From positions 1 to 15,717 of the forward strand of contig JBMGUZ010000064.1 in the NCBI GenBank assembly GCA_051530055.1: a DNA stretch of 15,717 bases, given 5' to 3'. Every line of letters starts with the position of its first letter. Position 1 is the first letter of the stretch. A program made the position numbers and the translations under genes. This document shows positions 2,939 through 15,717 of the stretch, in pieces. The stretch is from Neoechinorhynchus agilis (Eukaryota > Animalia > Acanthocephala). The notes under the pieces were generated by a model. It was not told the DNA's origin and made no database searches. It saw only the letters and a list, made by a program, of their open reading frames with translations.

Positions 2939-3114
2939 TGTGGAAGTGGGGAAAAATTATATATCTAGAAATCACTTCTAATCGCGCTGGACTTCTTTAG
3001 TCAATTATTGTTTGTAAGTTTTTAAATATTCGAGTTCGTGAGCAATAATTGACTGAAGAAGTACAGCGCGATTGGAAGTGATTTTTAGATATATAATGTT
3101 TCCCCACTTCCACA
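2939..3114. mobile_element. Foldback / MITE-like element, 72-bp arms, GAA direct repeats flanking
   Basis: 2939-3010 vs 3043-3114 are inverted with 5 mismatches and a 32-nt spacer. Termini TGT...ACA. GAA lies immediately on both sides (2936-2938, 3115-3117), consistent with a 3-bp target-site duplication. Confidence 0.8.
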
Positions 3115-3511
3115 GAATCAATAATAAGATGCAAATTTTCCGCTCGTTTATATAAAGACAATTCCGGATCTCATGGGACCTTTTTTGCTTTAGGAACAAT
3201 ATTTACGATAAGTCATATCGAGAGAAAATCCATATCGGGATTGTAAATTTTGATTTGTGGTGAATATACTCGCCCGGTAAAAAATCATTTTATTGTTCGC
3301 GAAATAATCATTGCTTGTAAGTTTATTGCAATATTGATTATTTCGTCAAAAGAGTTTTTCTCTTAGAGTAAGTTGAATTTTTTGGTAGGCCAAAACTGGA
3401 CATTCGATAATTTTTTGGTAACATTCAAAAAAAATTTTTTGGATCGATCAAATCTTAAGTTCTAAAGTCTCAGTTGAAAACGTTTGGAAATCTAAAATAA
3501 GTGAACCGAAT

Positions 3512-6500
3512 ACGGCCACATTAAAATGCTTAGTTTTTAAAGATAGTGTTTATATTGCCGAACATTTACCATCCTGATAGGCGGAATAAAAATTAAAGGA
3601 ATTTTTGGGTTAAATCTGAATGTTTTCGGCACAATGTTCTCCGGAAACAATTGGATTTAACCAAAAAATTCTTTAATTTTTATTCCACCACAAATCAAAA
3701 TATGAAAATAATTCAATGTTCAAACATTTAAAAGCATATAAAATAATTCATAAAAAAATACTTGAAGAAGATTCTCTAAAATGAAACGGCCAGGTTCAAA
3801 GTCTTAGTTTTTAACGATAGTGTTTTATTGCGCTTTATAAAAGAAACGGTAAAAGTGTGACTGAGAAGTCTCTTCTCAACATTCGTTTTATGGCGGAATA
3901 AAAATTAAAGGAATTTTTGGGTTAAATCTGAATGTTTTCGGCACAATGTTCTCCGGAAACAATTGGATTTAACCAAAAAATTCTTTAATTTTTATTCCAC
4001 CACAAATCAAAATATGAAAATAATTCAATGTTCAAGCATTTAAAATCATGCAAAATAATTCATAAAAAATACTTGAAGAAGATTCTCTAAAATGAAACGG
4101 CCAGGTTCAAAGTCTTAGTTTTTAACGATAGTGTTTTATTGCGCTTTATAAAAGAAACGGTAAAAGCGTGACTGAAAAGTCCCTTCTCAACATTCGTTTT
4201 ATGGCGGAATAAAAATTAAAGGAATTTTTGGGTTAAATCCGAATGTTTTCGGCACAATGTTCTCCGGAAACAATTGGATTTAACCAAAAAAAATCTTTAA
4301 TTTTTATTCCACCACAAATCAAAATATGAAAATAATTCAATGTTCAAACATTTAAAAGCATATAAAATAATTCATAAAAAAATACTTGAAGAAGGTTCTC
4401 TAAAATGAAACGGCCAGGTTCAAATGCTTAGTTTTTAACGATAGTTTTTTATTGCGCTTTATAAAAGAAACGGTAAAAGTGTGACTGAGAAGTCTCTTCT
4501 CAACATTCGTTTTATGGCGGAATAAAAATTAAAGGAATTTTTGGGTTAAATCTGAATGTTTTCGGCACAATGTTCTCCGGAAACAATTGGATTTAACCAA
4601 AAAATTCTTTAATTTTTATTCCACCACAAATCAAAATATGAAAATAATTCAATGTTCAAGCATTTAAAATCATGCAAAATAATTCATAAAAAATACTTGA
4701 AGAAGATTCTCTAAAATGAAACGGCCAGGTTCAAAGTCTTAGTTTTTAACGATAGTTTTTTATTGCGCTTTATAAAAGAAACGGTAAAAGTGTGACTGAG
4801 AAGTCCCTTCTCAACATTCGTTTTATGGCGGAATAAAAATTAAAGGAATTTTTGGGTTAAATCTGAATGTTTTCGGCACAATGTTCTCCGAAAACAATTG
4901 GATTTTACCAAAAAATTCTTTAATTTTTATTCCACCACAAATCAAAATATGAAAATAATTCAATGTTCAAACATTTAAAATCATATAAAATAATTCATAA
5001 AAAAATGCTTGAGAAGATTCTCTAAAATGAAACGGCCAGGTTCAAATGCTTAGTTTTTAACGATAGTGTTTTATTGCGCTTTATAAAAGAAACGGTAAAA
5101 GTGTGACTGAAAAGTCTCTTCTCAACATTCGTTTTATGGCGGAATAAAAATTAAAGGAATTTTTGGGTTAAATCTGAATGTTTTCGGCACAATGTTCTCC
5201 GGAAACAATTGGATTTAACCAAAAAAAATTTTTAATTTTTATTCCACCACAAATCAAAATATGAAAATAATTCAATGTTCAAACATTTAAAATCATATAA
5301 AATAATTCATAAAAAAATACTTGAAGAAGATTCTCTAAAATGAAACGGCCAGGTTCAAATGCTTAGTTTTTAACGATAGTGTTTTATTGCGCTTTATAAA
5401 AGAAACGGTAAAAGTCTGACTGAGAAGTCTCTTCTCAACATTCGTTTTATGGCGGAATAAAAATTAAAGGAATTTTTGGGTTAAATCCGAATGTTTTCGG
5501 CACAATGTTCTCCGGAAACAATCGGATTTAACAAAAAAAAATTCTTTAATTTTATTCCACCACAAATCAAAATATGAAAATTATTCAATGTTCAAACATT
5601 TAAAAGCATATAAAATAATTCATAAAAAAATACTTGAAGAAGATTCTCTAAAATGAAACGGCCAGGTTCAAATGCTTAGTTTTTAACGATAGTTTTTTAT
5701 TGCGCTTTATAAAAGAAACGGTAAAAGTGTGACTGAGAAGTCCCTTCTCAACATTCGTTTTATGGCAGAATAAAAATTAAAGGAATTTTTGGGTTAAATC
5801 CGAATGTTTTCCGCACGATGTTCTCCGAAAACAATTGGATTTTACCAAAAAATTCTTTAATTTTATTCCACCACAAATCAAAATATGAAAATAATTCAAT
5901 GTTCAAACATTTAAAATCATATAAAATAATTCATAAAAAATGCTTGAAGAAGATTCTCTAAATGAAACGGCCAGGTTCAAATGCTTAGTTTTTAACGATA
6001 GTGTTTTATTGCGCTTTATAAAAGAAACGGTAAAAGTGTGACTGAAAAGTCTCTTCTCAACATTCGTTTTATGGCGGAATAAAAATTAAAGGAATTTTTG
6101 GGTTAAATCCGAATGTTTTCGGCACGATGTTCTCCGGAAACAATTGGATTTTACCAAAAAATTCTTTAATTTTATTCCACCACAAATCAAAATATGAAAA
6201 TAATTCAATGTTCAAGCATTTAAAATCATGCAAAATAATTATAAAAAATACTTGAAGAAGTTCTCTAAAATGAAACGGCCAGGTTCAAATGCTTAGTTTT
6301 TAACGATAGTTTTTATTGCGCTTTATAAAAGAAACGGTAAAAGTTTGACTGAGAAGTCTCTTCTCAACATTCGTTTTATGGCGGAATAAAAATTAAAGGA
6401 ATTTTTGGGTTAAATCTGAATGTTTTCGGCACGATGTTCTCCGGAAACAATTGGATTTAACCAAAAAAAATCTTTAATTTTTATTCCAATACAAATCAAA

Positions 6501-7774
6501 ATATGAAAATAATTCAATGTTCAAGCATTTAAAATCATGTAAAATAATTCATAAAAAATACTTGAAGAAGGTTCTCTAAAATGAAACGGCCAGGTTCAAA
6601 TGCTTAGTTTTTAACGATAGTTTTTTATTGCGCTTTATAAAAGAAACGGTAAAAGTTTGACTGAGAAGTCTCTTCTCAACATTCGTTTTATGGCGGAATA
6701 AAAATTAAAGGAATTTTTGGGTTAAATCCGAATGTTTTCCGCACGATGTTCTCCGAAAACAATTGGATTTTACCAAAAAATTCTTTAATTTTTATTCCAC
6801 CACAAATCAAAATATGAAAATAATTCAATGTTCAAACATTTAAAATCATATAAAATAATTCATAAAAAAATGCTTGAAGAAGATTCTCTAAAATGAAACG
6901 GCCAGGTTCAAATGCTTAGTTTTTAACGATAGTTTTTTATTGCGCTTTATAAAAGAAACGGTAAAAGTGTGACTGAAAAGTCTCTTCTCAACATTCGTTT
7001 TATGGCGGAATAAAAATTAAAGGAATTTTTGGGTTAAATCTGAATGTTTTCGGCACAATGTTCTCCGGAAACAATTGGATTTAACCAAAAAAAATTTTTA
7101 ATTTTTATTCCACCACAAATCAAAATATGAAAATAATTCAATGTTCAAACATTTAAAATCATATAAAATAATTCATAAAAAATACTTGAAGAAGGTTCTC
7201 TAAAATGAAACGGCCAGGTTCAAATGCTTAGTTTTTAACGATAGTTTTTTATTGCGCTTTATAAAAGAAACGGTAAAAGTGTGACTGAGAAGTCTCTTCT
7301 CAACATTCGTTTTATGGCGGAATAAAAATTAAAGGAATTTTTGGGTTAAATCTGAATGTTTTCGGCACAATGTTCTCCGAAAACAATTGGATTTTACCAA
7401 AAAATTCTTTAATTTTTATTCCACCAGAAATCAAAATATGAAAATAATTCAATGTTCAAACATTTAAAATCATATAAAATAATTCATAAAAAATACTTGA
7501 AGAAGGTTCTCTAAAATGAAACGGCCAGGTTCAAATGCTTAGTTTTTAACGATAGTTTTTTATTGCGCTTTATAAAAGAAACGGTAAAAGTTTGACTGAG
7601 AAGTCTCTTCTCAACATTCGTTTTATGGCGGAATAAAAATTAAAGGAATTTTTGGGTTAAATCTGAATGTTTTCGGCACAATGTTCTCCGGAAACAATTG
7701 GATTTAACCAAAAAATTCCTAATCATGCAAAATAATTCATAAAAAATGCTTGAAGAAGATTCTCTAGAATGAAA
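3512..7774. repeat. Tandem satellite array, ~312-bp unit, 13 full copies plus a partial; each unit contains a ~110-nt inverted repeat
   Basis: GCGGAATAAAA anchors at 3581, 3893, 4204, 4517, 4828, 5139, 5452, 5765, 6074, 6381, 6693, 7005, 7317, 7628 (periods 307-313, differing mainly in homopolymer length). A diverged lead-in lies at ~3512-3558. The last unit is internally deleted and ends at ~7774. Confidence 0.98.
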
Positions 7775-8489
7775 ATGATAAAAAGACGTAAAGTTGCTTC
7801 ACATCGGAGAATCAAAAGTGTATAAAATGCAATTTTTGAAGCAATCTAAGAAAATCTATGTAACCCTAAGAGTCCAGATACTCCATGCTCGCGTTTCTGG
7901 ACACCATAGAACCAATCAAAAATCAGCTAAATTCATTAATGGCAATCGATCGTACCAATGAATTCGACTGCGAACAAATGTCGAAAACACGTTTTATAGG
8001 ACTTTGTGAGAACCGTAGAAATCGATCTGTTCAAAAACGAATATCGTGTTGTAGACTTATTCCTTTGAGACTAGGAGTTATGTGTTTTGAGGTAAACATT
8101 AAAATAAGCTTTTCTTCAAGAAAGCGCGCTTAGTGTATATGCGTTGCTCCGTCATTGAACGTTTATAAGAAACTGATACGAGCATGAACATTGTTGAGTG
8201 GGTAAGGCTCCATCTTTTAACGATTTCGTGAGATTTGGGGTCGGTCCTTGAAGTCGAATGAGCGATTATGGACACCACTGGCGGCAGCAACGAATTGGGT
8301 CATTTTACTATTAAATAAAAAATCTATTTGTAAAAATACCTGAAAAAATTTCGCAGTATCAGCGGAAATTTCTTTGAGTTAAAACATTTTAAAATGAGAC
8401 CAAAAGCGGACCCATCTATCGCCGATAATTTACTTATATATCCCGGGCGATTGGCAGGGAATGGTGTTTCCACGGACAATGCGAAGGAG

Positions 8490-10944
8490 AAAGATTTTCT
8501 TTATCCTTACCATTCGGGCCAAGTGTCCACCGAAAAAACTTTTAAAGTAGTATTTCAAACTACTTTCATAAACGAAATGACGATGTTGGAGAGGTTGAAG
8601 GTTTACGAACTGGGAATTCTATTCCTTAAGCGATATTTCCGAAACAGTATTATTCCCTTGTTTACAAGGAATCGTAAAAATTGAGGATTACTTCGTTTTC
8701 AATGTCTCAAAAGCAATTTAAGAGAATTGAGGGATAGTTTAGATCGATAATTTCAGAGCTTTAGAGTTGTTCAAAACAAGCGGGACAAACTTTCCACACT
8801 TCGATGTCGCTAATTTAACACACACTTCATAACTCCACTTGCCTTTAGCTCGAAAATAAAGATTTTCTTTATCCTTACCATTCGGGCCAAGTGTCCACCG
8901 AAAAAACTTTTAAAGTAGTATTTTAAACTACTTTCATAAACGAAATGACGATGTTGGAGAGGTTGAAGGTTTACGAACTGGGAATTCTATTCCTTAAGCG
9001 ATATTTCCGAAACAGTATTATTCCCTTGTTTACAAGGAATCGTAAAAAATTGAGGATTACTTCGTTTTCAATGTCTCAAAAGCAATTTAAGAGAATTGAG
9101 GGATAGTTTAGATCGATAATTGCAGAGCTTTAGAACTTTTTAAAACAAGCGGGACAAACTTTCCACACTTCGATGTCGCTAATTTAACACACATTTGTTT
9201 GGTGTTTTTTTTGGGTACCAAAAAACTTTTAAAGTAGTATTTCAAACTACTTTTATAAACGAAATGACGATGTTGGAGAGGTTGAAGGTTTACGAACTGG
9301 GAATTCTATTCCTTAAGCGATGTCTCCGAAACAGCATTATTCCCTTGTTTACAAGGAATCGTAAAAACTGAGGATTACTTCGTTTTCAATGTCTCAAAAG
9401 CCATTTAAGAGAATTGAGGGATAGTTTAGATCGATAATTGCAGAGCTTTAGAACTTTTTAAAACAAGCGGGACAAACTTTCCACACTTCGATGTCGCTAA
9501 TTTAACACACACTTCATAACTCCACTTGCCTTTAGCTCGAAAATAAAGATTTTCTTTATCCTTACCATTCGGGCCAAGTGTCCACCGAAAAAACTTTTAA
9601 AGTAGTATTTCAAACTACTTTTATAAACGAAATGACGATGTTGGAGAGGTTGAAGGTTTACGAACTGGGAATTCTATTCCTTAAGCGATGTCTCCGAAAC
9701 AGCATTATTCCCTTGTTTACAAGGAACCGTAAAAACTTGAGGATTACTTCGTTTTCAATGTCTCAAAAGCCATTTAAGAGAATTGAGGGATAGTTTAGAT
9801 CGATAATTGCAGAGCTTTAGAACTTTTTAAAACAAGCGGGACAAACTTTCCACACTTCGATGTGGCCAATTTAACACACAACCAAAAAACTTTTAAAGTA
9901 GTATTTCAAACTACTTTTATAAACGAAATGACGATGTTGGAGAGGTTGAAGGTTTACGAACGGGAATTCTATTCCTTAAGCGATGTCTCCGAAACAGCAT
10001 TATTCCCTTGTTTACAAGGAATCGTAAAAAATTGATTACTTCGTTTTCAATGTCTCAAAAGCAATTTAAGAGAATTGAGGGATAGTTTAGATCGATAATT
10101 GCAGAGCTTTAGAACTTTTTAAAACAAGCGGGACGAACATTCCACACTTCGATGTCGCTAATTTAACACACAACCAAAAAACTTTTAAAGTAGTATTTCA
10201 AACTACTTTCATAGACGAAATACCAATGTTGGAGAGGTTGAAGGTTTACGAACTGGGAATTCTATTCCTTAAGCGATGTCTCCGAAACAGCATTATTCCC
10301 TTGTTTACAAGGAATCGTAAAAAATTGAGGATTACTTCGTTTTCAATGTCTCAAAAGCCATTTAAGAGAATTGAGGGATAGTTTAGATCGATAATTGCAG
10401 AGCTTTAGAACTTTTTAAAACAAGCGAGACGAACATTCCACACTTCGATGTCGCTAATTTAACACACAACCAAAAAACTTTTAAAGTAGTATTTTAAACT
10501 ACTTTCATAGACGAAATGACGATGTTGGAGAGGTTGAAGGTTTACGAACTGGGAATTCTATTCCTTAAGCGATGTCTCCGAAACAGCATTATTCCCTTGT
10601 TTACAAGGAATCGTAAAAAATTGAGGATTACTTCGTTTTCAATGTCTCAAAAGCCATTTAAGAGAATTGAGGGATAGTTTAGATCGATAATTGCAGAGCT
10701 TTAGAACTTTTTAAAACAAGCGGGACAAACTTTCCACACTTCGATGTGGCCAATTTAACACACAACCAAAAAACTTTTAAAGTAGTATTTCAAACTACTT
10801 TTATAAACGAAATGACGATGTTGGAGAGGTTGAAGGTTTACGAACTGGGAATTCTATTCCTTAAGCGATATCTCCGAAACAGCATTATTCCCTTGTTTAC
10901 AAGGAATCGTAAAAAATTGAGGATTACTTCGTTTTCAATGTCTC
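8490..10944. repeat. Tandem satellite array with long (368 bp) and short (296 bp) unit variants, ~8 copies of the core
   Basis: The C of AAAAACTTTTAAAGTAG falls at 8539, 8907, 9226, 9594, 9890, 10182, 10478, 10774, giving periods 368, 319, 368, 296, 292, 296, 296. Confidence 0.97.
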
Positions 10945-12695
10945 GATTTTGTTAATTTAAAGAGGAGGTACAAACAGAAGGAAAATGTCAGACAATTCTT
11001 TGCACCTTCTCCTCCGCCATTGTATATATATGTGAGCATCGTCAGTTTGCATTGCTGACAGTTCACCTCATTTTCCAACACAATGAAGACTGAAGATGCT
11101 CACACATTCTGAGAAACCCAACCTAGTGGAATCTGTCGCTCGTCGTCAACTATGCATTTCTGGCATACCTTTCTTTTTTATTAGCTCAAGCCACTCGAAA
11201 TTTCATTCTTTACTCACATCTCGATCGACACTCATTTCGTGTGGTTCTAAAAGTGTTATTGATCGACCGTCGCCATACATGATAGGCAAATTTGAGCTTC
11301 CTGGCTGTCAGTGAGTACATGGCGTCATTCAACAACGTCTTTGTTGAGACGAAAAACCCACAAAATCAATAAAAGAAAGTTTGCTCGTGGATAAGAGAAC
11401 CCTGAAATTATACCAGGTCTATGGACTATTAAAGATAAAAAGCACTGTAACAGTGGACATCAAATATATCTTTAAAGTTGACTTTATAAGTTGGGCAAAA
11501 CGTTTCTAGTGAGATTGATGCTTTAAAGCGAACTCGGACAACTTTTTCAAAACAAATTCTTTATCAAAGGGCATTCACGGATCTCAGGCGAAGAATTACA
11601 AGTTGTTTTCCCCAAAATGGTACATTACATATCAAAGACATAATCTTGCTGTGCCATAAGACGTGCCAAATAATTCTCGTGTATTCATTCTGTGATAAAT
11701 AGGAAATGATAAGTGCTACTGCAAAGGAAATTAGAATGAGTTGACTTCTTTTTAGTGGTTCATTACGCAAAAATATCTTAATTATAAACTTCTTTTGACT
11801 AATTTTCCTAGAGTCGACGGACCAATGCATTTCGTTTACACTTTTTGATTTTAATAACTAATATTCTGCCCAATTTTTTAGTCAAATCGTCTCAATAGAA
11901 ACCTTCTGAATTGTGGTAAAGTGACAAAATGTGTTTTTGTTTGGTTGCAATGATATCTCTAGACACCATAGAGATTTGCAATTTCGACTGCGATTTTGTT
12001 TAGTACCTTTTGTATATAAGAAGATCCACTCTGTTATAATGTGAGAAACCTGACTACTACCGAGAGTATCGTTTATGCAGAATCACAGCGGGGTAACCGT
12101 TTTTTCATGCTAATTTGTGTTCGAATTAGATTCGAAACTAACGTTCACTCAGACATTAAATTCATAGACTCTTAAATTTGTTTAATTTTTCTTAAATCGA
12201 CAACGACCGGTAAACACTCATTTCTCCAATGAACGGCGATTTTGAATTTCAGTCCGTAAATTGGGATCCTCATTTAAAAACCTAAGAAAGACGATGTTCA
12301 ATTTGGTACGCTGAGTTCAATTTCAGGCACAAATTAACGATTTAAAATTATTAAGCATATTTTAACGACTATTTCTTGAAACAACAATAATGAAATATTT
12401 CTCAATGTTCCTCTTCGTCTCATAATTTCGAACTTCGATCCCGTGACCCGCGTAGCTTGTAAGCACGTAAAAAAAGAGATCTGTTCACCTTATCAAAATG
12501 GCAGAAAAGACAACCACCGTTGTTCCATATCTCACACTTCAATGCGTCTTGCGTGTGCTATCAACGTTGCATCTCGGTCTTTTATACGTTCTTAGCAATA
12601 AAGAACACATCGCCAAAAAAATCGATTGAACAAAGTTGCGCATTAATGTCATGGAATAAAAATAAATACGATTTATGAACAAAAAAATTGGAGCG

Positions 12696-12700: not shown

Positions 12701-12709
12701 GAAGTGCCG

Positions 12710-12782
12710 CGTCCATGGCAGGACTTGAACCTGCAATCTCCGGCTCCGGAGGCCGGCGCCTTAACCATTAGGCCACATGGAC
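12710..12782 (-). tRNA. tRNA-Arg(CCG): tRNA-Arg, anticodon CCG, intronless, CCA not encoded
   Basis: Minus strand folds as a full cloverleaf: acceptor GTCCATG/CATGGAC, D-stem GCCT/AGGC, anticodon stem CCGGC/GCCGG with loop CTCCGGA, T-stem GCAGG/CCTGC with loop TTCAAGT. 73 nt. Confidence 0.96.
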
Positions 12783-12880: not shown

Positions 12881-12996
12881 GAATTTTTTTTGAAAACTGG
12901 CCAGCCAGTAACTTTTATTAAGTATCAATGTGTGGCCTTTTATCACACGGCTGATAATTTTCCTTTTGGTACACAGCCCACCGATCTGGTTTAGGG
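12881..12996. mobile_element. Single-arm (truncated) copy of the MITE-like family at 13264-13443
   Basis: GAAAACTGGCCAGCC...TTTTATTAAGTATCAATGTGTGGCCTTTTATCACAC.GCTGATAATTTT matches 13264-13356 directly. CACAGCCCACCGATCTGGTT matches the reverse complement of 13366-13385. Confidence 0.75.
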
Positions 12997-13023
12997 AAGC
13001 GCATAAAATCACTCAATACCCTG

Positions 13024-13028
13024 AAAAA
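13024..13028 (-). terminator. Putative Pol III terminator (T5) of the tRNA-like unit
   Basis: First run of >=4 T on the minus strand downstream of position 13214. Confidence 0.45.
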
Positions 13029-13152
13029 TACGGTTATGAGTTTGTACATCTTCGTCCGGATCATCGATACCTCTCGATGAGGCTGGACTCATCAGTGAGT
13101 TTCCTCCCTTCAACGAGGTATTTCGTCCCCATTGTTCGTCATTGGTGGCAAC

Positions 13153-13163
13153 GGATTCGAACC
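13153..13163 (-). promoter_or_regulatory. Pol III type-2 B-box
   Basis: GGTTCGAATCC, a perfect consensus, falling at linear positions 52-62 when 13214 is taken as position 1. Confidence 0.7.
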
Positions 13164-13196
13164 AGTTGAACATTAACTGGGATCAAGGGCATTAGT

Positions 13197-13207
13197 CCAC
13201 TTGACCA
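13197..13207 (-). promoter_or_regulatory. Pol III type-2 A-box
   Basis: TGGTCAAGTGG (10/11 match to TGGCNNAGTGG) at positions 8-18, 33 nt upstream of the B-box, which is tRNA spacing. Confidence 0.6.
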
Positions 13208-13290
13208 CCTCGACACAACTGCAGAATGTCAAATTCTGCGAGTTTTTTTAATTTCAGGCCATTGAATTTTTGAAGACTGGCCAGCCGATA

Positions 13291-13443
13291 AATTTTATTA
13301 AGTATCAATGTGTGGCCTTTTATCACATGACTGATAATTTTTCCTTGGGCACACAGATTTCTCTGAACCAAATCGGTGGGCTGTGTGCCCGAAAAATTAT
13401 CAGCTGTGTGATAAAAGGCCACACATTCATACTTAATAAAATT
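13291..13443. mobile_element. Foldback / MITE-like element, ~65-bp arms
   Basis: 13291-13356 vs 13381-13443 are inverted (4 mismatches plus a 3-nt indel) around a 24-nt spacer. A second partial copy lies at 12881-12996. Confidence 0.8.
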
Positions 13444-13793
13444 AAAATATTCTTTAATTTAATGCTCAAACTGTGCTATTAATAATTATAAAAATTATCG
13501 CGAAATTCACTTTCCGTAATTGAACTTTTTTTTAAAATGCGTTAAGGTAGAAAATTCGAACTCCGCAGTCTTAAAAGTAACTCAAATTGAAAACTATATA
13601 ACGGTAAAACTGAATAATTTACGAAATGTTTAATCTACGTTGCGATAAGATATTCCTAAAACGAAAATTTCAAATCTTTAGAGATTTATCTTAAAAGTTT
13701 GCGCTTGGTGCGTCCATAAAAGTAATTCATTTCACCTCGTGCTTTAAACATTACAATCGAAATCAACAATATCGAGGACATCAGATAAGCTTT

Positions 13794-14610: not shown

Positions 14611-15054
14611 CTAAGCCGGTGTACCCGTGGTTGCTGCAGCTGCAGCAAGTGCAGCTCCAATGCCTGATCCGTCGGTAGCCAATGAAATCCTATACTGTAT
14701 GTTCTTCTCCAAAAGCAAGTTACAATAATACTCAACATGATGTTTGAACTTGGGATGGTATCGATACAGACTCCCATCGATTCCAATAGTCGGTGACCTT
14801 CTCGCCATTTTGAACAATACTGCCGACAACGCACCGGCCAATAGTTTTGCCGCTCGCTGAGTCACTAAACGGCATACATAATGAACAATGGCACAATCGT
14901 CCACAGTAGCGTTTGCATAACCAATTCGATTCAGAATATTTCTTGTCTTTTTAAACGTCAATCCCCTATCGGTCTCAATATCGGACACATATTGGGTGTA
15001 AAATGCGTCTCTATTGTAAAGCAACGATTGTCCCGAGGAGTATTCTGTGATGGT
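14611..15054 (-). CDS. HK: Hexokinase, C-terminal segment
   Basis: Minus-strand translation gives ...LLYNRDAFYTQYVSDIETD...CRLVTQRAAKL...TIGIDGSLYRYHPKF...ATDGSGIGAALAAA..., the hexokinase C-terminal DGSLY and DGSG motifs, ending at TAG 14613-14611. The 5' boundary is uncertain (15054 or 15042). The ORF track labels this '+', but it is minus. Confidence 0.93.
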   Translation of the reverse strand, partial: TITEYSSGQSLLYNRDAFYTQYVSDIETDRGLTFKKTRNILNRIGYANATVDDCAIVHYVCRLVTQRAAKLLAGALSAVLFKMARRSPTIGIDGSLYRYHPKFKHHVEYYCNLLLEKNIQYRISLATDGSGIGAALAAAAATTGTPA

Positions 15055-15093
15055 CTACAAAAGCACAGAACCCATTGAGACCATCACAAATTA
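15043..15093 (-). other. 51-nt interruption of hexokinase CDS: TA-flanked inverted repeat containing two in-frame stops (non-canonical intron or micro-transposon insertion)
   Basis: Plus strand reads TA|TTCTGTGATGGTCT-21 nt-AGACCATCACAAAT|TA. The arms match 12/14 (11 contiguous). In-frame TAA at 15093-15091 and TAG at 15057-15055. Confidence 0.65.
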
Positions 15094-15717
15094 AGGCCGA
15101 TTTTCAAGTCCATTTTTCGGAAACAATAGATTATTCTCGACTAAATCGACTAGAATAATTCGGACGATTTCACCCAAGTACATGCCGGAAATCATCTTCT
15201 CGAATTTTTGAAATCCCGGATTGATAGATGCCTCGTCTACTTCACGATCGTAAACCGTAGTAAATCTTTCAAGATTGTAGTTCTTGTCTGAGTCTCCGTA
15301 AGCTCCCCATTCACAGTTAATGATCATATACTTGTCTGGAGGACCGATCGTAGATTCTACTTTCTTTATATTGACAATCTTTTCCAAATAGCACGCATTT
15401 GTACCAGTTCCAACGATCATCCCCATGGCACAGTCCGGGTACATGTACGAAGTGGCTATCAATGTACCGACAGTATCGTTCACTAATGCAATCACCTCTA
15501 AATTGATTTCTCGTTCATCGATAGAATTTTGAAGGAATTCAACCACGTCTTCACCTACGACGTCCGGACAGTCGAATCCTTTCGTCCAACCTATCAAATA
15601 ACCTTGTTGTAAAGACTCTTGTTGGCATGGAAAAGAAAATGTGAATCCAATCTGCATGCGAACACTGTTGTCCAAATCGTGCTCCTCGTGAAAAGACTTA
15701 ATCTTGTCAGCAATAAA
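15094..15717 (-). CDS. HK: Hexokinase, middle segment (5' end lies beyond the window)
   Basis: The frame is open to the window edge (FIADKIKSFHEEHDLDNSVRMQ...). Motifs GFTFSFP, WTKGF, VNDTVGT, GTGTNACY, NCEWGAYG and FEKMISGMYLGEIVR are diagnostic of the eukaryotic hexokinase family. It is in the same frame as the C-terminal segment. Confidence 0.96.

Follow-up and report, generated by a model that had tools for sequence, protein, structure and literature searches.

A tRNA-derived Pol III-type unit of 191 nt, starting with GTCGAGG, lies on the minus strand (13214→13024) of the Neoechinorhynchus agilis window, by which we mean the whole 15,717-nt stretch of DNA analyzed here. We tentatively read it as a solitary tRNA-derived SINE-type element and give this reading somewhat less than an even chance. 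As such, the unit would consist of a head that lacks a tRNA fold and keeps an intact type-2 Pol III promoter, a GC-rich body of ~86 nt with no relation to tRNA, and an AT-rich tail of 27 nt that closes with T5. It is an unclassified and fairly ordinary instance of a well-known kind.

The tRNA-like head measures 78 nt (13137–13214, minus strand). Its A box, TGGTCAAGTGG, spans unit positions 8–18 (window 13207–13197) and matches the consensus TRGCNNAGTGG at 10 of 11 positions, and its B box, GGTTCGAATCC, at unit positions 52–62 (window 13163–13153), is an exact consensus match (11/11). The two boxes are 33 nt apart and both stand in exact standard tRNA numbering, just where a first-pass annotation of the window had located them in a minus-strand unit with the same first seven bases. 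A scan that tolerated at most one mismatch per box and a spacing of 25–64 nt recovered A+B pairs in the window only in the unit and in a true tRNA-Arg gene, and in 2 of 300 composition-preserving shuffles. The unit's box pair exceeds chance and, because a pair this good is so rare among shuffled windows, the tRNA ancestry of the head is real. The head comes from a tRNA, with the tRNA-type internal promoter kept.

By hand count, the head has kept 21 of its 22 box positions and 11 of the 12 near-invariant tRNA positions, whereas pairing in its four stems is close to random. This combination of kept boxes and random stems matches, by analogy, the pattern of SINE heads and of tRNA-type Pol III units. 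In the tRNA register, acceptor positions 1–7 and 66–72 form one pair out of seven, in keeping with the first-pass description of an unpaired acceptor; in a shifted register, GUCG(1–4)/UGAC(74–77) and GGUGG(6–10)/CCACC(67–71) build a 9-bp closing stem around the 78-nt head. Forcing the head into a cloverleaf gives +13 kcal/mol, compared with −24.3 kcal/mol for its free, rod-like fold, and a cloverleaf is predicted to be energetically impossible. ARAGORN makes no tRNA call on the unit, its only call in the window being the tRNA-Arg, and the Rfam tRNA model (RF00005) has no match to the unit at the gathering score or at E ≤ 10 (651-nt and 101-nt inputs). These results agree with the earlier judgment that the unit is not a functional tRNA and has retained its promoter boxes.

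The unit differs from its surroundings in base composition. Its GC content of 47.1%, initially estimated at ~48% in what was rightly called an AT-rich setting, compares with 33.9% for the window and with 31.6% and 39.6% for the 500-nt flanks, an enrichment that is genuine and modest. Head and body form a single block of 47–53% GC from ~13230 to 13051. Within it, the body (13051–13136, minus strand; ~86 nt, about 47–53% GC) is compositionally continuous with the head, and its GC content is attained by 3% of background non-coding 108-nt windows. Because the GC block runs on beyond the head and falls in the top 3% of the background, the body is not ordinary flank. Two 7-mers of the body (GGACGAA and AAACTCA) are present in two copies each, at a distance of ~71 nt; an internal duplication was rejected, since such 7-mers are estimated to be at chance level and no longer repeats were found.

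After the body comes the AT-rich tail (13024–13050, minus strand; 27 nt), which ends in the T5 (13028–13024) already recognized in the first reading. This T5 is the unit's sole run of four or more T residues; downstream of the A and B boxes, no Pol III-type terminator comes before it. The remark that the unit has no internal T4 is correct but describes nothing specific to it: read from the sequence, the T4-free stretch on the unit's strand extends over ~365 nt from about 13393, reaching ~180 nt upstream of the unit and running across a neighboring foldback repeat. Directly upstream of the head lies a 52-nt AT-rich spacer (13215–13266, minus strand), which contains an A/T run (about −40 to −29) and an 8-bp hairpin (13220–13240). 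Read on the plus strand (13220–13250), the 8-bp hairpin is followed by a T7, which would halt antisense Pol III read-through at the 5′ edge of the unit.

A structured body, as proposed in the first-pass annotation, did not emerge from the folding analysis. The unit has an MFE of −53.4 kcal/mol, compared with −49.1 ± 4.2 kcal/mol for shuffles (z = −1.03), and 27 of 200 shuffles reach an equal or lower MFE; the antisense strand reaches z = −1.65. By these predictions, the body is not detectably structured and the fold of the unit is not unusual. The companion statement that the body is none of 7SL, 7SK, U6, Y or vault RNA holds: Rfam families for these RNAs, for RNase P/MRP and for snoRNAs gave no match at gathering thresholds or at a cut-off of E ≤ 10, which was also applied to short inputs down to 101 and 166 nt. 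The best body matches are noise (sR52, E = 2.8; SNORD116, E = 8.4 and 14 bits against a gathering score of 35). A C/D-box snoRNA was rejected: UGAUGA is present, but the SNORD116 alignment runs past the T5 and includes neither a D box nor a terminal stem. Of the signature first assigned to the unit, that of a tRNA-derived SINE or Pol III ncRNA, the tRNA-derived head and the Pol III promoter remain and the structured body does not.

Two foldback repeats bracket the unit in the same orientation. The full copy, H1 (13267–13444, minus strand), has arms of ~72 nt and a 22-nt tail and ends 52 nt upstream of the head, and the half copy, H2 (12887–12999, minus strand), has its loop flipped, is 87–89% identical to H1 and ends 104 nt upstream of the tRNA-Arg. 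No further copies of this ~180-nt foldback were found in ~30 kb of the chromosome, and in Rfam it attracts only sub-threshold, miRNA-precursor-like matches (e.g., MIR841 with 44 bits against a gathering score of 200). Because the spacers and the tRNA or tRNA-like parts are far more diverged than the foldbacks, H1 and H2 do not belong to a segmental duplication with the tRNA-like sequences. Their placement hints at a mobile element that may target Pol III-transcribed loci (n = 2); if it does, the unit is, or was, bound by TFIIIC/TFIIIB. A separate foldback at 2939–3114 has 72-nt arms of 93% complementarity with 32 nt between them, and shows no sequence relationship to the H repeat.

The unit sits among other repeats in a gene-poor interval, and the DNA between the hexokinase gene and the left end of the window consists mostly of tandem repeats. 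The satellite at 3441–7787 has a 311-nt unit in 14 copies, in which alternating copies are 96–99% identical and the other subtype is 80–84% identical to them; it is a two-monomer higher-order repeat. Further satellite arrays have units of 184/215 nt (1–1059) and 296/369 nt (8533–11067). On the other side, the window holds the two C-terminal exons of hexokinase, separated by a short intron (14611–15717, minus strand). The hexokinase stop and the unit downstream of it are ~1.4 kb apart, and hexokinase, unit and tRNA-Arg are all on the minus strand. The hexokinase gene model belongs to a 19.4-Mb chromosome (GCA_051530055.1), and the public gene models divide hexokinase between products of 389 aa and 150 aa. 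Upstream of hexokinase, the chromosome carries a synaphin-like ORF and a gene for glutathione synthetase. The closest named relative of the enzyme is that of Pomphorhynchus laevis (58% identity), followed by those of rotifers (about 50%), and the Schistosoma mansoni hexokinase 1BDG is no closer to it than vertebrate enzymes are. This places the window, which is eukaryotic nuclear DNA, in a syndermatan genome, most likely that of an acanthocephalan, and led us to reject Schistosoma as its source.

No second copy of the unit was found in ~30 kb of the same chromosome (the window and two further stretches, with 3.6 kb contributed by one chromosome-walking step), and the P. laevis hexokinase locus yielded no relative. 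A 20-mer from the unit retrieved just two unrelated, GC-rich bacterial contigs from the JGI metagenomes, and scans of viral contigs came back empty. As a proxy for ORFs called on repeats, the antisense 85-aa frame was compared with protein collections, where it has no relatives. The sense 57-aa frame produced a single phmmer match, which we rejected as a false positive: one 25-bit match recurs identically ten times, and the DNA shows no similarity. The matching sequence is an 826-aa 'protein' read through a GC-rich short tandem repeat (GCA_050626445.1, VSKV01007993.1, 3001–5481; E = 1.9e-16), and an E value that arises from summing ten identical 25-bit matches calls for caution with repeat-derived ORFs in protein searches.

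Signs of insertion were sought at the borders of the unit. There is no target-site duplication beyond chance: the longest direct match between the flanks is 8 nt, is equalled in 20% of shuffles, and is explained because the two foldback copies are homologous. The AT-rich tail is neither poly(A) or A-rich nor a simple repeat. A MITE-like 14-nt inverted repeat around the unit (13252–13265/13013–13026, 12 of 14 positions) was rejected as being at about the chance level by our estimate and having no target-site duplication.

A bona fide tRNA-Arg(CCG) gene (12709–12782, minus strand; ARAGORN and Rfam, 73.6 bits) lies 241 nt downstream of the unit on the same strand, as good as identical to the 240 nt first reported, and has a T5 terminator a few bases beyond its own end. 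The unit could thus be a decayed tandem duplicate of a tRNA gene, a pseudogene whose downstream 115 nt are ordinary flank that lacks T4 by chance, which we regard as somewhat unlikely. The position next to a same-strand tRNA-Arg fits such an origin, as do the acceptor ends (GTCGAGG...CAATGACG in the unit and GTCCATG...CATGGACG in the tRNA-Arg), which by hand reading agree at 10 of 14 positions plus the discriminator. P. laevis has tandem tRNA clusters with pseudogenes (PMC7310846), no second copy, target-site duplication or structure was detected for the unit in the searches above, and its T4-free stretch is not specific. The head as a whole, however, is only ~57% identical to the tRNA-Arg (hand count), and its global alignment to the tRNA-Arg scores 30, compared with 35–43 for generic Tyr, Ser and Leu tRNAs. 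No homology was detected between the flanks of the unit and those of the tRNA-Arg, and with the alignment no better than to generic tRNAs a duplicate of the adjoining gene was rejected. The B box of the tRNA-Arg, GGTTCAAGTCC, differs at two positions from the exact-consensus B box of the unit; this difference, together with a head that is no closer to the tRNA-Arg, argues against a simple local duplicate. Nor should neutral decay that randomized four stems have spared the boxes at 21 of 22 positions, and near-intact boxes and invariant positions next to randomly pairing stems are not what a tRNA duplicate would show after uniform neutral decay. The continuous GC block, which extends 86 nt past the tRNA-like part, argues against a pseudogene plus random flank. 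A 380-nt tandem duplication of foldback and tRNA together was rejected as well, since identity drops from 87–89% between the foldbacks to only ~57% between head and tRNA, with unrelated spacers.

A single-copy, lineage-specific Pol III ncRNA gene, in which the tRNA-like module acts as the promoter for a downstream RNA of ~115 nt and perhaps also as an RNase P/Z processing handle, is in our view unlikely. In its favor, the boxes are intact and in register beyond chance, a T5 closes the compositional block, the interior is T4-free and the −30 region AT-rich, and the 9-bp closing stem brackets the head; a foldback repeat stands just upstream of both the unit and the tRNA-Arg, as if an element had targeted two active loci. 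Against it, the fold does not stand out in stability from those of shuffles (z = −1.0), Rfam gives no family match at E ≤ 10, and nothing comparable occurs near the P. laevis hexokinase gene. A stronger version, in which an active, acanthocephalan-specific Pol III gene uses the module as promoter or handle for the ~115-nt RNA and the foldback is a mobile element that targets Pol III loci, strikes us as quite improbable. Should the unit be single-copy and expressed, it would be a case of an unrelated small RNA under the control of a tRNA-type promoter module, in a parasite lineage that has received little study. The last alternative concerns a ribozyme. The body carries both halves, 5′ and 3′, of a hammerhead core (13051–13095, minus strand; CUGAUGA-GUCC-(27 nt)-GGAC-GAAG), in which CUGAUGAGUCC...GGACGAA resembles the Schistosoma hammerhead and the GUCC/GGAC helix II is the same as in the Schistosoma Sm-alpha ribozyme. 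This string sits downstream of a tRNA-like Pol III head, and in Sm-alpha, too, a type I hammerhead is joined to a head derived from a tRNA (PMC2770079, PMC4918200), so that the unit might be a decayed SINE or retrozyme with a hammerhead and a tRNA promoter, the acanthocephalan counterpart of Sm-alpha/Sj-alpha. We consider this very improbable. The conserved A15.1 is replaced by G, and helix I, helix III and the NUH cleavage site are absent in the type I, II, III, dimeric and split topologies, all inspected by hand. The hammerhead families (RF00163, RF00008, RF02275-7) have no match at E ≤ 10 even with a 166-nt input, 12% of shuffled windows contain the relaxed core, which is also found, by chance, at 11090, and the unit is not tandemly repeated. 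With G15.1, the missing helices and cleavage site, no Rfam match and a chance-level core, a hammerhead ribozyme is ruled out.

The solitary tRNA-derived SINE-type element is the interpretation that we carry forward. Counting for it are the boxes, in tRNA register and beyond chance; the conserved promoter and invariant positions combined with random stems and the absence of a tRNA call by ARAGORN or Rfam; the single GC block that gives way to an AT-rich tail; a total length and a head/body/tail layout that are typical of tRNA-derived SINEs; and the location among other repeats in a gene-poor interval. Counting against the SINE-type element are the lack of a second copy in ~30 kb, the P. laevis locus and the metagenome, viral and protein collections; the lack of a target-site duplication beyond chance, with a tail that is neither A-rich nor a simple repeat; the built-in T5, which is unusual for a SINE; the scarcity of SINEs in P. 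laevis and rotifers, where they make up 0.38% and about 0% of the genome, respectively (PMC7310846); and the same-strand closeness to a real tRNA gene, which also fits a local origin. Because SINEs are scarce in Syndermata, the family of the unit would be low-copy or old. Confusion of tRNA-derived SINEs with tRNA pseudogenes is well documented, for example for Sm-alpha in Schistosoma (PMC2770079).

As a SINE-type element, the unit would be recognized by TFIIIC through box B and box A, and TFIIIB would be placed on the AT-rich −30 region, at the A/T run of about −40 to −29. Pol III would start a few bases upstream of 13214 and stop at the T5, giving a transcript of ~190–200 nt. This transcript would have no stable conserved fold and would most likely be a by-product or a former template for retroposition, not a working RNA, and nothing points to a function that depends on its structure. 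If the unit belongs to a SINE family, it would be among the few tRNA-derived SINEs described in Syndermata, a group reported to be almost SINE-free, and it could be useful in acanthocephalans as a marker of phylogeny or insertion. For annotation, tRNA scanners will miss the unit, and the labels tRNA, ribozyme and structured ncRNA are not warranted.

Several known systems share parts of this architecture. tRNA-like leader or promoter modules occur in yeast RPR1 and snR52, in plant tRNA-snoRNA dicistrons and in the tRNA-miRNA transcripts (TMERs) of MHV68. Like them, the unit runs from an A/B-box module through a downstream RNA region to a T-run; it differs in that its downstream part fits no RNA family and has no significant fold. 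The tRNA pseudogenes of P. laevis clusters (PMC7310846) are similar to the unit in two respects, the loss of the cloverleaf and the position beside a functional, same-strand tRNA gene; in the unit, however, the boxes are selectively intact, the B box is unlike that of the neighbor and the GC block extends well past tRNA length. With Sm-alpha/Sj-alpha the unit shares a parasitic worm host and a Pol III head of tRNA type, with CUGAUGA...GAA and a GUCC/GGAC helix II in the region that follows. Copies of Sm-alpha are called as tRNA-Gln or pseudogenes by tRNAscan-SE, blastn gives about 38,500 hammerhead-motif candidates in S. mansoni, and hammerhead repeats are often tandem (PMC2770079; PMC4918200). 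In contrast, the unit is called by neither tRNA nor hammerhead models, is solitary and not tandem in the window, and has no helices I and III, cleavage site or A15.1. Compared with tRNA-derived SINEs in general, it is single in the ~30 kb searched, ends in its own T5 and has neither a target-site duplication nor an A-rich or simple-repeat tail, but it resembles them in its head with A and B boxes in register and degenerate stems, its unrelated body, its AT-rich 3′ end, its length of ~190 nt and its setting among repeats.
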